Below the pieces are notes generated by a model that was not told where the DNA came from, ran no database searches, and worked only from the letters and a program-made list of their open reading frames with translations. 64,000 bases of DNA from the IMG/VR virus record IMGVR_UViG_3300035182_002586, positions 62,001-126,000 of that record; one strand, given 5' to 3'. The translations under genes were made by a program, and so were the position numbers. Shown one piece after another: positions 28,574 through 62,274 of the stretch. Numbering within the stretch: the first letter of the stretch is position 1; each line of letters starts with the position of its first letter.

Positions 28574-28879
28574 TCAGACGAGCGGGACCTCGCGGCCGAT
28601 CCCCGTGTCGAGCAAGGCGTAGACGAAGAGGCTCGCGAGCAGCTCCTCCTCGCACCCGTCTGGGAAGGCCAGGAGGACGCCCCACCGTCGCGCGAGGCCC
28701 ACGATGAGCGCCTGGATGGCTTCGGTGACCGAGAGGTCGTCAGGCACCATCTCCGAGGCCATCGCCTGAACGATTTCGAGAGGTGTCCCGCGATAGACGG
28801 CGACCGGGGCGCTTCCCGTGATGCTGATCGTGCGCGGAAGTGTACGGAGAGTTTCGGTTGGTACGGATGAGCGATTCAC
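28574..28879 (-). CDS. Hypothetical protein
   Basis: ORF with overlapping start/stop. Confidence 0.5.
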   Translation of the reverse strand: MNRSSVPTETLRTLPRTISITGSAPVAVYRGTPLEIVQAMASEMVPDDLSVTEAIQALIVGLARRWGVLLAFPDGCEEELLASLFVYALLDTGIGREVPLV

Positions 28880-29205
28880 GCAACGACCGTCCTAGGGTTT
28901 CGGGCGGGAGCAAGACGTCGCTCCCACGCAAGCTGTTTCTTCACGGCCTTCCATGCGGGCACCTTCGGGCTCGCACTTTCCACCTGGAGGATCTGACGGG
29001 GGAGAGGCCCTGTTGCGTCGAGGGTCATCGAGGTCACCCTCCACTCCCCTGATGCGTCGAGCTGCTCAGCGCGACCGCCGTTCATCCGCCGGAGTTTGAA
29101 GGCCAGCTTCATGCGGTCCCCGATCCGAAGAGGACCGGGGAGTACGAGCTGCACGTTCGGTGCCCCCGGCACGTCGCTCAAGGTGATCACCGTGGGGAGG
29201 TGCAT
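28876..29205 (-). CDS. Hypothetical protein
   Basis: ORF. Confidence 0.55.
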   Translation of the reverse strand: MHLPTVITLSDVPGAPNVQLVLPGPLRIGDRMKLAFKLRRMNGGRAEQLDASGEWRVTSMTLDATGPLPRQILQVESASPKVPAWKAVKKQLAWERRLAPARNPRTVVA

Positions 29206-29289
29206 GGGGCCTGTACGTGCATTTTCATAGGTAAATCCTCGATCCGATCGTTTTGTTAGCCGATCCCCGCGAGCTGGTGTACGAGGGTC

Positions 29290-29640
29290 GAACCCCCGAG
29301 GTTTAGGGGTCGGTCATCTCGTCCCGCAAAGACGCTATGGCCGGGCTCGTTGGCGAACCGGCTTCCTCACGGAAGCTCCCCTCACGGGGTGCCACGAGAT
29401 GCTCTCGTGGTCACGAGAACCGCCCCCTTCTCGAAGAGGACGGTGACCACGGGTAGGCCGATCGAGGACTCGGAGGTCCAGACGTCGGTGAACGCGAAGT
29501 AGCAACCGAGGGATCGCCTCCGAAGTTCACGTGGAACTCCCCGATCCCCCTCCCGGAGCATTGAGCGATCGTTCCTGACGGAGCGGTCCCCTCACCGGGA
29601 AGAGCGAGCGAAACCCGGCATCCTCTTCTCTCTCGTGACG
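29290..29640 (+). ncRNA. Candidate structured non-coding RNA (alternatively origin-associated DNA hairpins)
   Basis: No ORF; about 10 inverted repeats, some nested; GGTGTA motif just upstream at ~29276. Confidence 0.4.
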
Positions 29641-29647
29641 TTCCCCT

Positions 29648-29820
29648 AGGATCAGATCAGAGAGATCCTGATCAAGTAGGTCAGGATCTTAGAGAAACAG
29701 CAGCAAGTACGAGTGATCCAGCAACAGCAACGAGTACGGATGTAGCAGTAGCAGCAGTAGACGACGACGCACCAGCAGTGACGGCAGCAGCAAGTGGTGA
29801 CGGTGACGAGGGACAACGGA
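29648..29820 (+). repeat. GATC-rich inverted repeats followed by a strand-biased CAG/CAA/TAG low-complexity tract
   Basis: aggatcagatcagagagatcctgatcaagtaggtcaggatc then cagcagcaa, gtagcagtagcagcagtag. Confidence 0.6.
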
Positions 29821-30000
29821 GTGCGGGGTGGGAGAGCCACCCCAAGAGACCGACGGACATAGATTGTCCGTCAGGTGCGGAGTCGAACGAAAAGGTGTTG
29901 ACCGTTCGACCCAAAGGCGTATCGTCGCGGGCGTAGCTCGATAGGTCACCCATCCCGATCCTCGGGCCGGGCCACCTCAGAGCGGATCGGGTTGGTACGA

Positions 30001-30438
30001 ATGCTCAAGACTGCACGAGAGATCGTCGCCCTCGGCGACGAGAGACTTGTCGTCGACTACGCCGTCGAGGCGGATCGACAGATCAAGGCGACCAAGGCGG
30101 AATTCGAAACCGCCAAGGACTTCTTGCGTCTTCGAGCTGCGGACATCGTGGCCCACACGAACGAACCGACGGCACAACTTAAGGGGAGCAGCGGCTCCGT
30201 GGTTGTGTCTTTCCAGAAGCCGCAGGCTGCGGTACGCAAGGGTGTCGATCCGCTCGCCTTCGAGCAGACGATGGACCCTAGCCTCTGGAGCACCTTCTTT
30301 CGCAAGAGGGTCGTCGTGGAGGTCGCCGACGATGCGGAGGCAAAGCTCGCCACGCTCACGCCTGCACAGCGGGCAGCGATGCTGAACCTCATCGAGATCC
30401 GAACGGACGTTCCGCGCGTGACGGTCAAGCAAGGCTGA
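30001..30438 (+). CDS. Hypothetical protein
   Basis: ORF. Confidence 0.6.
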   Translation: MLKTAREIVALGDERLVVDYAVEADRQIKATKAEFETAKDFLRLRAADIVAHTNEPTAQLKGSSGSVVVSFQKPQAAVRKGVDPLAFEQTMDPSLWSTFFRKRVVVEVADDAEAKLATLTPAQRAAMLNLIEIRTDVPRVTVKQG

Positions 30439-30519
30439 CCAGACCAAGGGGTAGCCGTGGTGGCTCGTGGTGACCACAAGCTCGATGTGGGGGGGATCGT
30501 CGCCGGACGTGCGCCCGCT

Positions 30520-31137
30520 CTACCCTCGTCGGAAGCTCGCTGCGTACGTCCAGGCGATCACGCTGGATGTCTCGGTGCCGAAGTTGGCTCCGAAGTCCAC
30601 GGCTCGCAGCCAGAGGCGGCGTGCGTCTTCCACATCTCCCTCTGCGAGGCGCTCGATGGCCTCGGCCCAGAAGTGCAGGGCCATGGTCTCGATCTCCGCA
30701 CCAGGGATTCGCAGCGTGGTGGTGACATCACCAGCAAGTTCAATGGCTTGCTTCGTGTGACCGGCCGCAAGGGCGAGCCAGGCGGAGCACACAGGAGCGG
30801 CCGCGTGTTCCTCGTCGAGGGCCACACCGGTCAGCGGGCTTCCAGCCACGAGGCGCATAGCCTCTTCGAGAGTCGTTTCGATCGCGTCACCAGACGCGAT
30901 CGGCCGTCGGGCCGCGAGGACTTCACGAGTGAGATCGCGAGCTTTGCCTCGCACATCCTCGTGCCCGTCCGCTGCGGCTACCGCGGCGTTCATAGCCCGG
31001 ACCTCTGCGATCACGCTGACGGTCGGGTTCACCACAACCCCCGGAAGTCGACGAACAACCGCCCTCGCGCGGGATGGCTGCGACAAGGGCGGTTGTTCTG
31101 TACGCCCATCGGCATACGGGCGAACGCAGACGTACAA
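30520..31137 (-). CDS. Hypothetical helical protein (start uncertain)
   Basis: Ala-rich ORF. Confidence 0.5.
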   Translation of the reverse strand: MYVCVRPYADGRTEQPPLSQPSRARAVVRRLPGVVVNPTVSVIAEVRAMNAAVAAADGHEDVRGKARDLTREVLAARRPIASGDAIETTLEEAMRLVAGSPLTGVALDEEHAAAPVCSAWLALAAGHTKQAIELAGDVTTTLRIPGAEIETMALHFWAEAIERLAEGDVEDARRLWLRAVDFGANFGTETSSVIAWTYAASFRRG

Positions 31138-31298
31138 CGCGACGAGTCACGGGTCAAGAGGGCCTTCTCTACACGTACGGTTTCGCAGGGGTTTTTCGGT
31201 AGGGTCGTGGGCGTCGGCATGCGTCCGGGATCTTTTTTCAGGGTCGACGATGGATCGGCGTCGTCGTCGCTCTGTACTTACACCGAGCGAGGGATGGC

Positions 31299-32480
31299 AT
31301 GAGCGAAACGCAGTCTGAACTGGTCGTAGTCGGCAAGGGTTCGATCACCGCTGCATCGGCGGAAGAGGAGTGGTCCGAGACGGACCTCGACACGGACGTG
31401 ACGGCAGAGGTGGGCGAGGACGACAACGACAACGACACGGCTGCGCTTGCGCTCGTGACGCCGCCCCCGGCGACGCGCCCGCGTGGTGCGTCGCTCGACA
31501 CGAACGAGGGCCGTCCGTGGCCGGCGGGCGTGCCGCGCAACTACGACGAGATGTACCAGACGTGGGGGAAGTACGTCTCGAACCTCATCGGCCGGTACAA
31601 CAAGGTCGATCGCAACTTCGAGGAGCTGGTCCAGTGGATCTGGGAGAAGCTCCTCCAGTCGAACCTCCTGGAGAAGTACGTCGACCGTCTCTACGACTCG
31701 CAGGAGACCGTCTCGAACTTCGAGGCGTGCCAGTTCGTCGGCCTCGCCTGGAGCGTCGAGCGCATCGGCCCGGACGGCAAGAAGCGCATGGATCGCGGCC
31801 CGTGGTACAAGCGCATGTGGCGCTGCTACTGCGGCGAGCCGATGGGTCGCAAGGGGAACATCCCGCTCGGCCCCGACGGTCAGCGGCTCCGGAAGAAGTC
31901 CGGCTGGATGCCGAAGATCGTCAAGGGGACGTGGGCCTCGAAGGAAGCTCTCCTCCTCCGCAGCGACGTCATCAAGTTCAAGGAACAGCTCGACGAGGAG
32001 CGCATGGAGGCGGCCCTGGAGGGCAAGGTCCTGCGCATCTGGCAGAGCATCGGGGAGTCGAAGATCCCGATCCCGGCGTCGACGGACGCGAACTTCGCGG
32101 GCTACTTGCGCCGCGCCGTCCGCAACCACTTCTGCAACTTCGTCCGCCACAAGGAGCGCAAGGAAAAGGAGCGGCTGCACGACCACTTCTTCACCTTCAC
32201 GAACCGTCTGGCGCAGAACGAGGGCGCGCAGTGGGAAGACCTGCTCGTCGACGAGCGGAGCGGCGGGGCCGCCGAGGCGTCCGCCGAGCTGAACGCGGCG
32301 CTCGCCAAGATGCTGCCGCACATCCCGGAGAAGTTCCAGAAGTCGCTCTTCGACCTCCTCATGGAGGGCGTGACCCTGGAACACTCGATCAACCGTCTGG
32401 ACGCGACGCCTGAGGAGAAGCGCACGATGTCGCGCGCCGTCTCCGCGGTGCGGCCGATCAGACGGCAGGCGGGCTACTGA
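31299..32480 (+). CDS. Phage sigma-factor-like protein with a large insertion in region 2
   Basis: YDEMYQTWGKYV...FEELVQWIWEKL [insert] FAGYLRRAVRNHFCNFVR; C-terminal L.KML..IPEKFQ....L...G.TL. Confidence 0.6.
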   Translation: MSETQSELVVVGKGSITAASAEEEWSETDLDTDVTAEVGEDDNDNDTAALALVTPPPATRPRGASLDTNEGRPWPAGVPRNYDEMYQTWGKYVSNLIGRYNKVDRNFEELVQWIWEKLLQSNLLEKYVDRLYDSQETVSNFEACQFVGLAWSVERIGPDGKKRMDRGPWYKRMWRCYCGEPMGRKGNIPLGPDGQRLRKKSGWMPKIVKGTWASKEALLLRSDVIKFKEQLDEERMEAALEGKVLRIWQSIGESKIPIPASTDANFAGYLRRAVRNHFCNFVRHKERKEKERLHDHFFTFTNRLAQNEGAQWEDLLVDERSGGAAEASAELNAALAKMLPHIPEKFQKSLFDLLMEGVTLEHSINRLDATPEEKRTMSRAVSAVRPIRRQAGY

Positions 32481-61253: not shown

Positions 61254-61327
61254 GCTCCCGTGGCCGAGTGGTTCAGGCGGGCGACTTTAAATCGCCGTCA
61301 ACGTGGGTTCGAGTCCCACCGGGGGCG
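61254..61327 (+). tRNA. Ochre suppressor tRNA, anticodon TTA at 61287-61289
   Basis: Full cloverleaf: GCTCCCG/CGGGGGC, GCC-GAGTGGTTCA-GGC, GGCGA-CTTTAAA-TCGCC, GTGGG-TTCGAGT-CCCAC; discriminator G; no encoded CCA. Confidence 0.85.
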
Positions 61328-61857
61328 CTCCTCTTCAAGTGGTTGCGGACAGATGATTCGGCTACCCCAAGCTGTCTGACTACTTCACTCTTTGAGGTCT
61401 TTGCAATCAAGTCCAGAAGCTCCTCCATCGGAGGCCATGCGGCACGCTTAGCTCTAGGCTTTCGGTGCCCACACGAACGACACTGCACACTGGACTTGGC
61501 GATCGTAGTCCCGCACCGACAGGTCTTGTGTGTGGCCTTCGCGATGCTCCGCCCACAGAACGTTGCGGTCTGTGAGTCGCAGTTAGGACACAGAAACCTC
61601 AAGTTTTCTAGTCTGTGATCACGATTCACACCGTTGATATGGTCCAGCCGAAGCACGAGAGGTTTTCCTCCCCACTCGGGCCCAAGCTGACAGCCAACAC
61701 AGTGGGATGTGTCCAGGGCCAGGCGCGCGATAGCGTTGCGCACGTAGGCTGCCCCTCCACCAGAAGCAGAGGGTCGACCTAGAGCACGAAGAATTGCAGT
61801 GACACTAGCGTGCTCTCGCACAAGCACCACCAGGGTGTCGTCAGAGATGGGTTACAT
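61273..61857 (-). CDS. HNH endonuclease overlapping the tRNA antisense; upstream ATG at 61857 followed by in-frame TAA (alternative GTG start 61830)
   Basis: LRLDHINGVNRDHRLENLRFLCPNCDSQT; C-terminal HTH. Confidence 0.75.
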
Positions 61858-61923: not shown

Positions 61924-62274
61924 ATGCAGGATCGAAGCTACCTCGCCGATCTCACCGAGGCACAGCTCAAGGGTGTCGCAGGTGCACTGGAGGCGCGGAT
62001 CAGGGACTCCAAGAAGAAGGCCACGCAGGCCCTCTCCAAAGACCCCGAGCTGATGAAGAGCTGGATCGCCACAATGTCGGCGGTCCCCGCTACGACCTCA
62101 GAGGAAGAAGACGCGAAGGAACTGGTCCGCAAGGCCCGCGAGGACCGTCGACTAGCCTTCGAGAAAGCCCTCGTCGAGCACCCGGAGGCGTACGTCCTCT
62201 ACCACATGGCGAACTACCTCGTCGGTCTTAGCGAGGCCGTCCGCAAGGAGCGGAGCGAGAGGGCTCGCAAGTGA
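61924..62274 (+). CDS. Hypothetical protein
   Basis: GGTGTA 10 nt upstream. Confidence 0.65.
   Translation: MQDRSYLADLTEAQLKGVAGALEARIRDSKKKATQALSKDPELMKSWIATMSAVPATTSEEEDAKELVRKAREDRRLAFEKALVEHPEAYVLYHMANYLVGLSEAVRKERSERARK

Follow-up and report, generated by a model that had tools for sequence, protein, structure and literature searches.

A predicted structured RNA gene, previously undescribed, in a small clade of huge bacteriophages

What occupies a long stretch of DNA that lies between two divergent genes of a huge phage, encodes no credible protein and is dense in hairpins? We examined such a gap in a window of 64,000 nucleotides (positions 62,001 to 126,000 of the 529-kb IMG/VR record IMGVR_UViG_3300035182_002586; coordinates below are those of the window unless stated otherwise). 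A reading made from the sequence alone had proposed that it specifies a structured non-coding RNA of about 350 nt with repeated protein-binding TCAC loops, and/or the replication origin. The observation itself is confirmed. The gap (29206-29991, 786 bp) lies between a minus-strand gene encoding a 109-aa protein (28876-29205) and a plus-strand gene encoding a 148-aa protein (29992/30001-30438), and contains no ORF with the codon bias of the genome; moreover, indels of 1-2 nt relative to the homologous locus L002 break every frame. All of the hairpins that had been listed are present within a few bases of the places given for them, and the whole stretch folds better than shuffled sequences on both strands (z = -5.0 on + and -3.6 on -). 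There are 15 GATC sites in 29230-29990 against a genome mean of 5.6 per 760 bp, placing the region in the top 0.2% of windows, although GATC is not over-represented genome-wide. The gap had also been called the longest gene-free stretch, whereas our crude gene caller lists other gaps of 0.5-1.2 kb in the window, some of which are probably caller misses.

The left-hand end of the gap (29206-29275) is a divergent promoter zone with AT-richer patches, poorly conserved relative to what follows, that holds a sigma-70-like GAAAAT/TAAAAT element about 20 nt before the minus-strand gene, and the upstream flank of the inferred RNA promoter. It is followed by a GGTGTA motif (29276-29281, + strand) which, as had been pointed out, has no ORF behind it. 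Of 332 copies of GGTGTA in the genome, 132 have an ATG 9-12 nt downstream, against about 14 expected, with no -35 element and no SD, indicating that this is the promoter element of about 130 leaderless genes. The copy in the gap is conserved in all four homologous gaps with a purine 10 nt downstream, which puts the inferred start of a + strand transcript at A 29291/29292. Literature searches found no description of this promoter, nor of the RNA discussed below. The GGTGTA-N10-ATG rule gives a handle on the transcription programme of this phage and on its almost entirely leaderless gene expression.

To ask whether the sequence behind this promoter is conserved as an RNA, we identified relatives through the flanking proteins; in all of them the gap is syntenic and 640-870 bp long. 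In three diverged relatives (loci L002, L005 and L007) the 332 nt at 29292-29623 are better conserved than the flanking proteins, with a core identity of 83/73/72% against 73/64/59-64% for the flanking genes. Comparison of just two sequences already revealed 15 compensatory pairs, and of 53 register-aligned pairs across the lineages 23 are compensatory, five one-sided and none broken. It should be noted that only four full-length lineages contribute to these counts, that the helices were partly defined by eye and then checked, which favours pairing, and that the core alone is only modestly more stable than shuffles (z = -2.0). Natural variants, from Logan contigs of DNA runs, add three compensatory double changes within one haplotype, and a further five single changes are tolerated only as G·U on the + strand, against one the other way. 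The core is present in one copy per genome. More distant copies of the P2 block (below) exist in other metagenomes at depths of 29-39. However, exact-pattern scans with conserved RNA blocks in viral, metagenome and genome collections found nothing, no similar DNA was found in known phages, and protein-pattern scans for the flanking families gave none in metagenome or genome collections and only two distant viral loci (L015 and L016). Neither of these, nor the more distant syntenic loci L009 and L011, gives a covariance-model match, and in L015 the corresponding stretch is an unstructured 99-codon ORF, so that the RNA is confined to a narrow clade. Pairwise alignment of L011 to the core was not interpretable, but shared short blocks (GGTGTA, GAAGTTGCAAC and GATCTCTAC) suggest a diverged homologue.

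The core keeps about ten helices and two pseudoknots. The first module (29292-29402) comprises hairpin P1 (29292-96 / 29306-10); hairpin P2 (29312-16 / 29338-42), which has an inner stem (29320-23 / 29331-34) and the invariant loop CCGCAAA; and a three-way junction formed by P3 (29346-55 / 29390-98) with hairpins P3a (29360-66 / 29371-77) and P3b (29378-81 / 29386-89), along with a conserved GAUGC. In an alignment of this module 93% of cells are paired against 40-51% for slid controls, with a covariation score of 0.29 against 0.06-0.08 that was reached by 0 of 500 shuffles, and a covariance model of the module finds one copy per genome. The 5' strand of pseudoknot PK1 (GCCGGG, 29340-29345) pairs with 29614-29619 and overlaps the 3' strand of P2, so the two pairings may alternate. 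PK1 reads GCCGGG/CCCGGC in the window, ACCGGG/CCCGGU in L002, ACCGAG/CUCGGU in L005 and ACUGGG/CCCAGU in L007, that is, three independent double compensations at homologous positions. There follows a variable arm, P4 (29403-29457; stem 29406-14 / 29443-51 with an inner hairpin), which is kept with one mismatch in L002 but replaced by arms of other length and sequence in L005 and L007, and in which one natural variant (29408 T>C) makes a C·A pair.

The central domain (29458-29548) contains P5 (29458-62 / 29484-88), hairpin P5a (29466-70 / 29475-79), whose CGGA loop (29471-74) pairs with UCCG (29519-22) to form pseudoknot PK2, a conserved GCGAAGUA (29494-29501), P6 (29510-16 / 29542-48) and hairpin P6a (29524-28 / 29534-38). 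All of these helices are found in the same order and fully paired in four lineages; P5, P6 and P6a change at most positions with compensation, and PK2 is CGGA/UCCG in three lineages and CGGU/ACCG in L007. Natural variants in this domain are 29524 A>G with 29538 T>C, 29462 T>C and 29486 C>T. The final part of the core (29549-29623) consists of the P7 arm (outer stem 29552-56 / 29595-99, variable inside), the conserved purine block GAAGAGNGAGNGAAA (29600-13), the 3' strand of PK1 (29614-19) and AUCC. Here one haplotype carries 29553 C>T with 29598 G>A and 29562 T>C with 29594 A>G, while 29568 A>G and 29582 A>G give G·U only on the + strand. The proposal of repeated protein-binding TCAC loops is not supported by these comparisons: in relatives the loops of the same hairpins read ACCA, GUUA, UUCC, AAAG and CCAC, and the third such loop, near 29590, is not a conserved hairpin but the 3' strand of a longer helix. 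Likewise the listed hairpins ccacgaga/tctcgtgg and gtgaac/gttcac are not kept in relatives.

Downstream of the core lies a variable pyrimidine-rich linker, with many indels among natural variants, and then the GATC cluster (together 29624-29689), an 11-bp palindromic hairpin (29663-73 / 29679-89) built of AGATCC/GATC repeats that may act as RNA or as DNA. The hairpin is kept in L002, and (T)AGATCC copies sit at this place in L002, L005, L007 and L009, while TAGATCC is rare in the genome (26 copies). It is followed by a U-poor, purine-rich tract (29690-29824) with triplet periodicity (AGC/AAC/AGU/GAC-type repeats) that opens with the conserved CAGCAAGUAC. The strand-biased CAG/CAA/TAG tract noted at first sight is real (in the 110 nt from 29695, A 37 and T 12). 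A comparable T-poor tract occurs in L002, L005, L007, L004 and L015, and since no homologous core is detectable upstream of it in L015 the tract may be a separate element. Readings of the tract as an Hfq site (A-R-N repeats), a Rho-utilisation site or a run of primase triplets, including the suggestion that CTG on the opposite strand is a DnaG-type priming triplet, remain conjecture. We also considered that the tract might be coding sequence with reassigned stop codons, because its frame (mod 3 = 1) equals that of ORF 29992-30438, with a coding-like GC phase pattern, and the genome carries a suppressor tRNA with anticodon UUA (61254-61328). This is contradicted by the data: the frame holds TAG and TGA but no TAA, whereas the tRNA reads only UAA, L002 has TGA TGA in the same frame, TGA and TAG end 558 of 587 called genes, and the tract is poorly conserved and full of indels. 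Beyond the tract come three hairpins before the neighbouring gene's own promoter and leader. Among them, that at 29825-31 / 29837-43 differs in sequence but is kept as a hairpin in relatives, and that at 29852-59 / 29865-72 (GGAC-AUAGAYU-GUCC, loop conserved) is unique in the genome. These two are a candidate 3' end or terminator, or a protein-binding site, although neither is followed by a U run, and no intrinsic terminator with a U tail was found.

The RNA matches no described family. A scan of the window at Rfam 15 gathering thresholds found only a tRNA, and a permissive scan of 29150-30050 on both strands at E≤10 gave zero matches, including to GOLLD, ROOL, OLE, HEARO, raiA, 6S, tmRNA, RNase P, group I/II introns and riboswitches. 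ARAGORN found no tmRNA in the window. A retron or DGR template is also not indicated, as the reverse transcriptase family PF00078 is absent from the record and there is no second copy of the gap sequence in the genome. Among the closest known systems are GOLLD and ROOL, large 'ornate' RNAs often carried by phages and prophages that form RNA-only multimers (PMC12286853). Like them, this is a large, intricately folded, pseudoknotted non-coding RNA of a phage with its own inferred transcription unit, no known function and no obligate protein partner nearby, and the 4-nt loop-to-strand pairing PK2 is of a kind that could equally act between molecules; it is, however, smaller (a 332-nt core, or about 580 nt with the tail), is not next to tRNA genes and is confined to a narrow clade of huge phages. 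Bacterial RNase P RNA is of similar size, and the long-range helix joining a strand just after a 5' hairpin to the 3'-terminal region, with the letters CCGGGCUC ... GAAACCCGGC.U, recalls its P4/CR-I/CR-V region; a junction with two hairpins follows this helix, and the genome belongs to a phage class known to carry tRNA genes. This likeness is a lead and not homology: RF00010 run on the whole 529-kb record gave a best hit of 6.1 bits (E = 3) at 373 kb and nothing at 91 kb, where the gap lies, while control genomes were detected, the J3/4-type A-rich strand is missing and the 5' and 3' ends do not pair. The packaging RNA (pRNA) of phi29 is also a phage-encoded structured RNA that depends on covarying 4-nt loop-loop pairings, but it is 120-170 nt long and restricted to phi29-like phages, shares no sequence or model similarity with the present RNA, and no link to packaging genes is seen here.

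It is formally possible that the structured RNA is a primer or regulator at a transcription-primed replication origin, in the manner of ColE1 RNA II or the T4 R-loop origins. In this view it would be transcribed from the GGTGTA promoter, fold, and then hybridise to the template in the purine-rich tract, with the GATC/AGATCC repeats and hairpins serving as initiator or loading sites. The arrangement of a promoter, about 330 nt of conserved folded RNA and a strand-asymmetric purine-rich tract about 400-530 nt downstream is similar in scale to ColE1 RNA II, the AGATCC repeats are conserved in relatives, a clamp loader and a 5'-3' exonuclease gene lie within 16-19 kb, and the raw cumulative skew has a local minimum at window 27-29 kb. 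However, when genes were separated by strand, codon-3 GC skew showed no replication-type sign change at 80-100 kb of the record, the local raw minimum follows gene orientation and the genome-wide trough is broad (90-210 kb of the record). There is no AT-rich unwinding element (GC 0.615 against 0.64 for the genome) and no tandem repeat in the gap, although degenerate AGATCC/GATC repeats are present and conserved, whereas a classic iteron array with flanking direct repeats, a better origin candidate, lies at 524.15-524.40 kb of the record. Furthermore, an R-loop would cover the strand carrying the CTG/GTC-type triplets instead of exposing it, the purine bias of the tract is not kept in L009, and no antisense partner was seen, a sigma-70 scan finding no promoter-like site for one, although the phage promoter type differs. 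The fold here is, in addition, conserved by covariation across diverged phages together with invariant loops. The origin reading is therefore without support and unlikely, but it is not excluded, because skew is weak genome-wide and there are no coverage or RNA data.

Could the core instead be a cis-acting leader, riboswitch- or attenuator-like, that senses a ligand or protein and whose downstream hairpins decide read-through into the 148-aa gene? This gene follows on the same strand in the window, in L002/L003, in L007 and probably in L009 and L011, P2 and PK1 are mutually exclusive as in switches, and hairpins lie between the core and the gene. Against this, L005 keeps the RNA but lacks the 148-aa gene, with the next gene lying on the other strand, the gene has its own conserved promoter and leader downstream of the hairpins, 200-370 nt separate the core from any expression platform, and no known riboswitch model matches. 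We consider this possibility improbable.

Taken together, the sequence-only interpretation is partly supported, in that a structured RNA of nearly the proposed length is upheld and sharpened while the protein-binding TCAC loops and the replication origin are not. We consider the gap to be mainly an RNA gene of a huge phage, and put the probability of a conserved structured non-coding RNA gene on the + strand at roughly 0.75. What the analysis demonstrates is that a single-copy stretch of 332 nt, matching no described RNA family, is under stronger purifying selection than the neighbouring proteins and keeps its helices and two long-range pairings through many compensatory substitutions, both between phage lineages and among natural variants of one lineage. 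That it is transcribed at all, from the phage's general GGTGTA promoter and on the + strand, is an inference from the G·U-type substitutions that keep pairing only in the + sense and from the register of the promoter, as are the start near 29292 and the continuation of the transcript through the GAUC-palindrome hairpin and the U-poor tract to the hairpins at 29825-29872; no RNA run holding the sequence was listed. Our tentative suggestion for its mode of action, which we hold at slightly less than even odds and which is a default and not a demonstrated property, is a stable, trans-acting folded RNA working as a protein-bound scaffold or ribozyme-like particle, in which the invariant single-stranded blocks (the CCGCAAA loop, GCGAAGUA and GAAGAG..GAAA) would be the functional or contact surfaces and the mutually exclusive P2/PK1 pairing could act as a conformational switch. 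A more speculative and rather doubtful possibility is that it represents a new class of large, double-pseudoknotted RNA specific to huge phages, acting either as a ribozyme or as the RNA core of a phage particle or enzyme, for example an RNA-processing or RNA-only assembly in the manner of RNase P or ROOL/GOLLD, with P2/PK1 as a built-in switch. Large, highly structured bacterial and phage RNAs are rare, and each class found so far (RNase P, tmRNA, group I/II introns, OLE, GOLLD, ROOL, raiA) has turned out to be either catalytic or architecturally remarkable. Huge phages are known almost only from metagenomes and their non-coding content is essentially unexplored, and an RNA that is more conserved than its neighbouring proteins, with two covarying long-range pairings and a clear promoter element, is a well-defined candidate for probing, cryo-EM and activity tests as a synthetic transcript alone, without culturing the phage.

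No partner protein was identified among the neighbours. Pfam and PHROGs searches were uninformative for the 109-, 101- and 148-aa proteins, and AF2 models of the conserved 109-aa and 101-aa proteins have no PDB fold match at E<0.6, while atlas look-alikes give DUF7173 / Mu-Gam-like for the 148-aa protein and nothing firm for the 109-aa protein. An HTH gene lies 1.2 kb to the left, which together with the divergent promoters and the GATC cluster could point to a purely DNA-level regulatory region of promoters, operators and methylation sites, with the hairpins as by-products of inverted-repeat operators. Operators do not explain 23 compensatory pairs, two long-range pairings 50-270 nt apart, the G·U strand asymmetry or a 332-nt block conserved above the level of the neighbouring proteins, and this reading, already contradicted for the core, can hold only for the flanks. 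The rightmost 110 bp are indeed ordinary and belong to the 148-aa gene. A conserved inverted repeat (29882-89 / 29903-10), which is sequence-conserved without covariation, overlaps a -35-like TTGACC (29898-29903) and is followed by GGCGTA/TATCGT (29916-25), forming the predicted promoter with a likely operator; conservation extends to L002 and L005, and L002 has GGTGTA here. The conserved 5' leader that follows (29926-30003) carries an inverted repeat (29950-61 / 29984-95) covering the start region, and is conserved down to L004, whose protein is 48% identical.

The record that carries the window is a single IMG/VR entry of 528,957 bp, of which the window covers bases 62001-126000. It is classed as a provirus, is 100% complete by CheckV, and has a GC content of 64%. 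We treat it as the genome of a huge phage, given that its genes are mostly orphans, that the best phage match of its clamp loader is a 485-kb uncultured phage, that look-alikes of the small proteins neighbouring the gap are almost all viral, and that the relatives identified subsequently sit on contigs of 125-490 kb, one of them in an NCBI assembly of the 9027xxxxx series.

The gap at 29206-29991 lies between a minus-strand gene for a 109-aa protein (28876-29205) and a plus-strand gene for a 148-aa protein (29992/30001-30438), and no ORF within it has the strong third-position GC bias of the genome. The hairpins listed in the sequence-only reading are all present, and the stretch folds better than dinucleotide shuffles, with z = -5.0 on the + strand and -3.6 on the - strand. 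It holds 15 GATC sites, which places it in the top 0.2% of windows of that size although GATC is not enriched genome-wide, and the T-poor, CAG-rich tract and its triplet periodicity are real. What that reading observed is thus confirmed, with small corrections.

Searches at the DNA level found nothing, and relatives were therefore sought through the flanking proteins. The 148-aa protein has a 72%-identical relative on Logan contigs (loci L002 and L003) and a 48% relative (L004), while the 109-aa protein has 57% relatives (L005 and L006). A profile search of the 148-aa family gave 117 representatives at 50% identity, one of which led to L007, on a 490-kb NCBI contig, and more distant relatives led to L009/L010 and L011. 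Language-model and structure look-alikes of the 148-aa protein point to DUF7173 and Mu Gam-like proteins, and one natural variant turns the TTG at 29992 into ATG. In every locus with enough DNA the gene order is the same: a translationally coupled pair of about 101 and about 109 aa on one strand, followed by a gap of 640-870 bp and, in all but L005, by the 148-aa gene on the other strand. The overlapping 109-aa (beta-rich, with a basic tail) and 101-aa genes, at 28574-29205 on the minus strand and in L005, L006, L007, L009 and L011, are always next to the large gap, even where the right-hand neighbour changes.

Alignment of the gaps shows that 29292-29623 is far better conserved than the rest. 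Identity over this core is 83% to L002, 73% to L005 and 72% to L007, compared with 73%, 64% and 59-64% for the adjacent coding DNA. Some blocks are invariant in all four lineages, for example the 21-nt block at 29319-29339 containing CCCG-Y-AAAGACG, and GCGAAGUA and GAAGAG..GAAAC are also conserved. Indels of 1-2 nt rule out coding.

RNAalifold applied to two sequences alone already gave 15 pairs with compensatory changes. With four sequences the same helices were located, in the same order and fully paired, in every lineage, namely P1, P2 with its invariant heptaloop, a three-way junction (P3/P3a/P3b), a variable arm (P4), P5/P5a, P6/P6a and a second variable arm (P7). Two long-range pairings stand out. 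The first, PK1, joins 29340-45 to 29614-19 and reads GCCGGG/CCCGGC, ACCGGG/CCCGGU, ACCGAG/CUCGGU and ACUGGG/CCCAGU in the four lineages, amounting to three independent double compensations; its 5' strand overlaps the 3' strand of P2, so the two may alternate. The second, PK2, joins the P5a tetraloop to the strand just after P6 and reads CGGA/UCCG in three lineages and CGGU/ACCG in L007. Over 53 register-aligned pairs, 23 change on both sides with pairing kept, 5 change on one side through G·U, 25 never vary and none is broken. It should be noted that several helices were found by eye and that MAFFT mis-registers the variable hairpins, so that this hand-built comparison leans towards pairing. 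An independent count for module 1, the part of the RNA holding P1 to P3, gave 93% of cells paired for the structure as given against 40-51% for slid controls, and a covariation score of 0.29 against 0.06-0.08, with 0 of 500 shuffles reaching the observed value.

Natural variants, in contigs from four other metagenomes aligned to 29262-29700, add independent evidence. One groundwater haplotype carries three compensatory doubles: 29524 A>G with 29538 T>C, 29553 C>T with 29598 G>A, and 29562 T>C with 29594 A>G. Five single changes (29462 T>C, 29486 C>T, 29568 A>G, 29569 T>C and 29582 A>G) keep or restore pairing only if the RNA is the + strand, whereas one change (29408 T>C, in the variable P4) goes the other way, and several changes fall in loops (29304, 29369, 29529 and 29533). 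High-depth contigs in two runs match only the P2 block (29306-29349) and have unlike flanks, and more distant versions of the RNA therefore exist.

The GGTGTA motif that had been flagged from the sequence alone is the key to strand and start. Of 332 copies in the genome, 132 have ATG 9-12 nt downstream, against about 14 expected, and the logo is c-GGTGTA-N10-(C)ATG, with no -35 and no Shine-Dalgarno element. This is a promoter that produces leaderless mRNAs, whose TA sits where -12/-11 would be. With a spacing of N9-12 it precedes about 130 genes (for example at window 15021/15045, 22665/22674, 33074/33085 and 58329/58340), is often arranged as back-to-back divergent pairs (TACACC..GGTGTA), and serves genes all around the gap, including the HTH, EndoV-like and CoaE genes. 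A weak sigma-like protein (393 aa, 31299-32480) is encoded 2 kb from the RNA gene. The copy at 29276-81 is conserved in all four relatives, with a purine 10 nt downstream but no ORF. A + strand RNA starting at about 29292 is therefore the natural reading, in agreement with the G·U asymmetry, although it remains an inference from sequence alone.

No Rfam family matches, either at gathering thresholds or at E≤10 on both strands. Some letters of PK1 and its surroundings recall the P4 region of RNase P, but the RNase P model finds nothing at the locus, and ARAGORN finds no tmRNA. The genome has no reverse transcriptase and no second copy of the region, which rules out a retron or DGR template. The repeated TCAC loops, which the sequence-only reading took to be protein-binding, differ in every relative and so are not sequence-specific sites.

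Downstream of the core, 29624-29660 is a variable linker, full of indels in natural variants. It is followed at 29663-29689 by an 11-bp GAUC-rich palindromic hairpin, which is kept in L002, and (T)AGATCC copies sit at the same place in L005, L007 and L009. The U-poor tract, at 29690-29824, opens with the conserved CAGCAAGUAC and is made of AGC/AAC/AGU/GAC-type triplets. A comparable tract occurs in L002, L004, L005, L007 and L015, the last of these being a locus with the same gene pair in a 363-kb IMG/VR phage. In L015 (2070-2420, minus strand) the place of the RNA core is taken by a leaderless, GGTGTA-N10-ATG, 99-codon Arg/Ser-rich ORF that is no more foldable than shuffles (z = -0.3), yet a very T-poor AAC/GAC/AGC tract still follows it. 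This raises the possibility that the tract is an element of its own, acting either as RNA or as DNA. Two hairpins follow at 29825-43 and 29852-72, the second of which has a conserved loop and is unique in the genome, and neither has a U tail. From 29882 onward the sequence belongs to the next gene, comprising a sequence-conserved inverted repeat over TTGACC, a GGCGTA/TATCGT element (GGTGTA in L002), and a conserved leader with a start-covering hairpin.

The sequence-only reading had also suggested a replication origin. Raw cumulative skew has a local minimum at window 27-29 kb, but genome-wide there is only a broad trough from 90 to 210 kb. When third-codon-position skew is computed separately for plus- and minus-strand genes the dominant signal is transcriptional, the coding strand being C-rich, and the average of the two gene classes shows no sign change at 80-100 kb. 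Nor is the region AT-rich. The record has a textbook array elsewhere: at 524.15-524.40 kb of the genome (524,150-524,400, outside the window), within a 1.4-kb gene-free gap, lie about 160 bp of tandem CCGATCAGGT(CAGGT) iterons, preceded by an AT-richer patch and followed by three further direct repeats, copies of CTTGAGCACCCACC, which together have the look of a classic origin or partition site. An origin at the RNA gene is unsupported, and an RNA-primed origin appears unlikely, although an origin here is not excluded because skew is weak throughout.

Collectively, the analysis establishes a single-copy, non-coding, 332-nt element under strong selection for a complex fold with two tertiary-type pairings, whereas its transcription on the + strand from the general phage promoter is inferred. 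We put a probability of about 0.75-0.8 on a structured ncRNA gene on the + strand. The interpretation offered from the sequence alone is accordingly supported only in part, in that a structured ncRNA is upheld while protein-binding TCAC loops and an origin are not. The RNA persists where the downstream gene is lost (L005), and that gene has its own promoter, so that a role as a cis-acting leader is improbable. The most economical view, which we hold only tentatively, is a trans-acting stable RNA, either a protein-bound scaffold or a ribozyme-like particle, in which the invariant single-stranded purine blocks and the P2 loop would be the functional surface and P2/PK1 a possible switch. The tightly linked 109-aa and 101-aa proteins are candidate partners, but both are orphans whose predicted folds match nothing known (AF2 pLDDT 71 and 80, with no PDB match).

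The element is not in Rfam. The large survey of candidate structured RNAs in IMG/VR reports motifs averaging 67 nt and required three matching regions (PMC10690425), and this RNA has no other match in that collection. Large ornate phage-borne RNAs of unknown function are known from GOLLD and ROOL (PMC12286853), and we therefore regard the present RNA as being of that kind but outside those families.

A second conserved gap lies close by, at 30994-31298, where GGTGTA sits on the minus strand at 31279-31284 with no ATG behind it. The sequence is conserved in L002 and L007, and a covarying hairpin with loop AUGCCG is present (GCCCGU/AUGGGC, GCUCGA/UCGAGC, GCCCGA/UCGGGU). It is either a structured leader of roughly 275 nt for the minus-strand gene 30520-30993 or a second small RNA. 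The long plus-strand ORF in this region (30457-31302) translates to a meaningless sequence, and the real gene is on the minus strand, encoding about 157 aa from the ATG at 30993. Finally, a tRNA with anticodon UUA, a UAA (ochre) suppressor type scoring 55 bits in Rfam, is present at 61254-61328 on the plus strand. TAA ends only 29 of 587 called genes, against 334 for TGA and 224 for TAG, raising the possibility of selective read-through or partial recoding.
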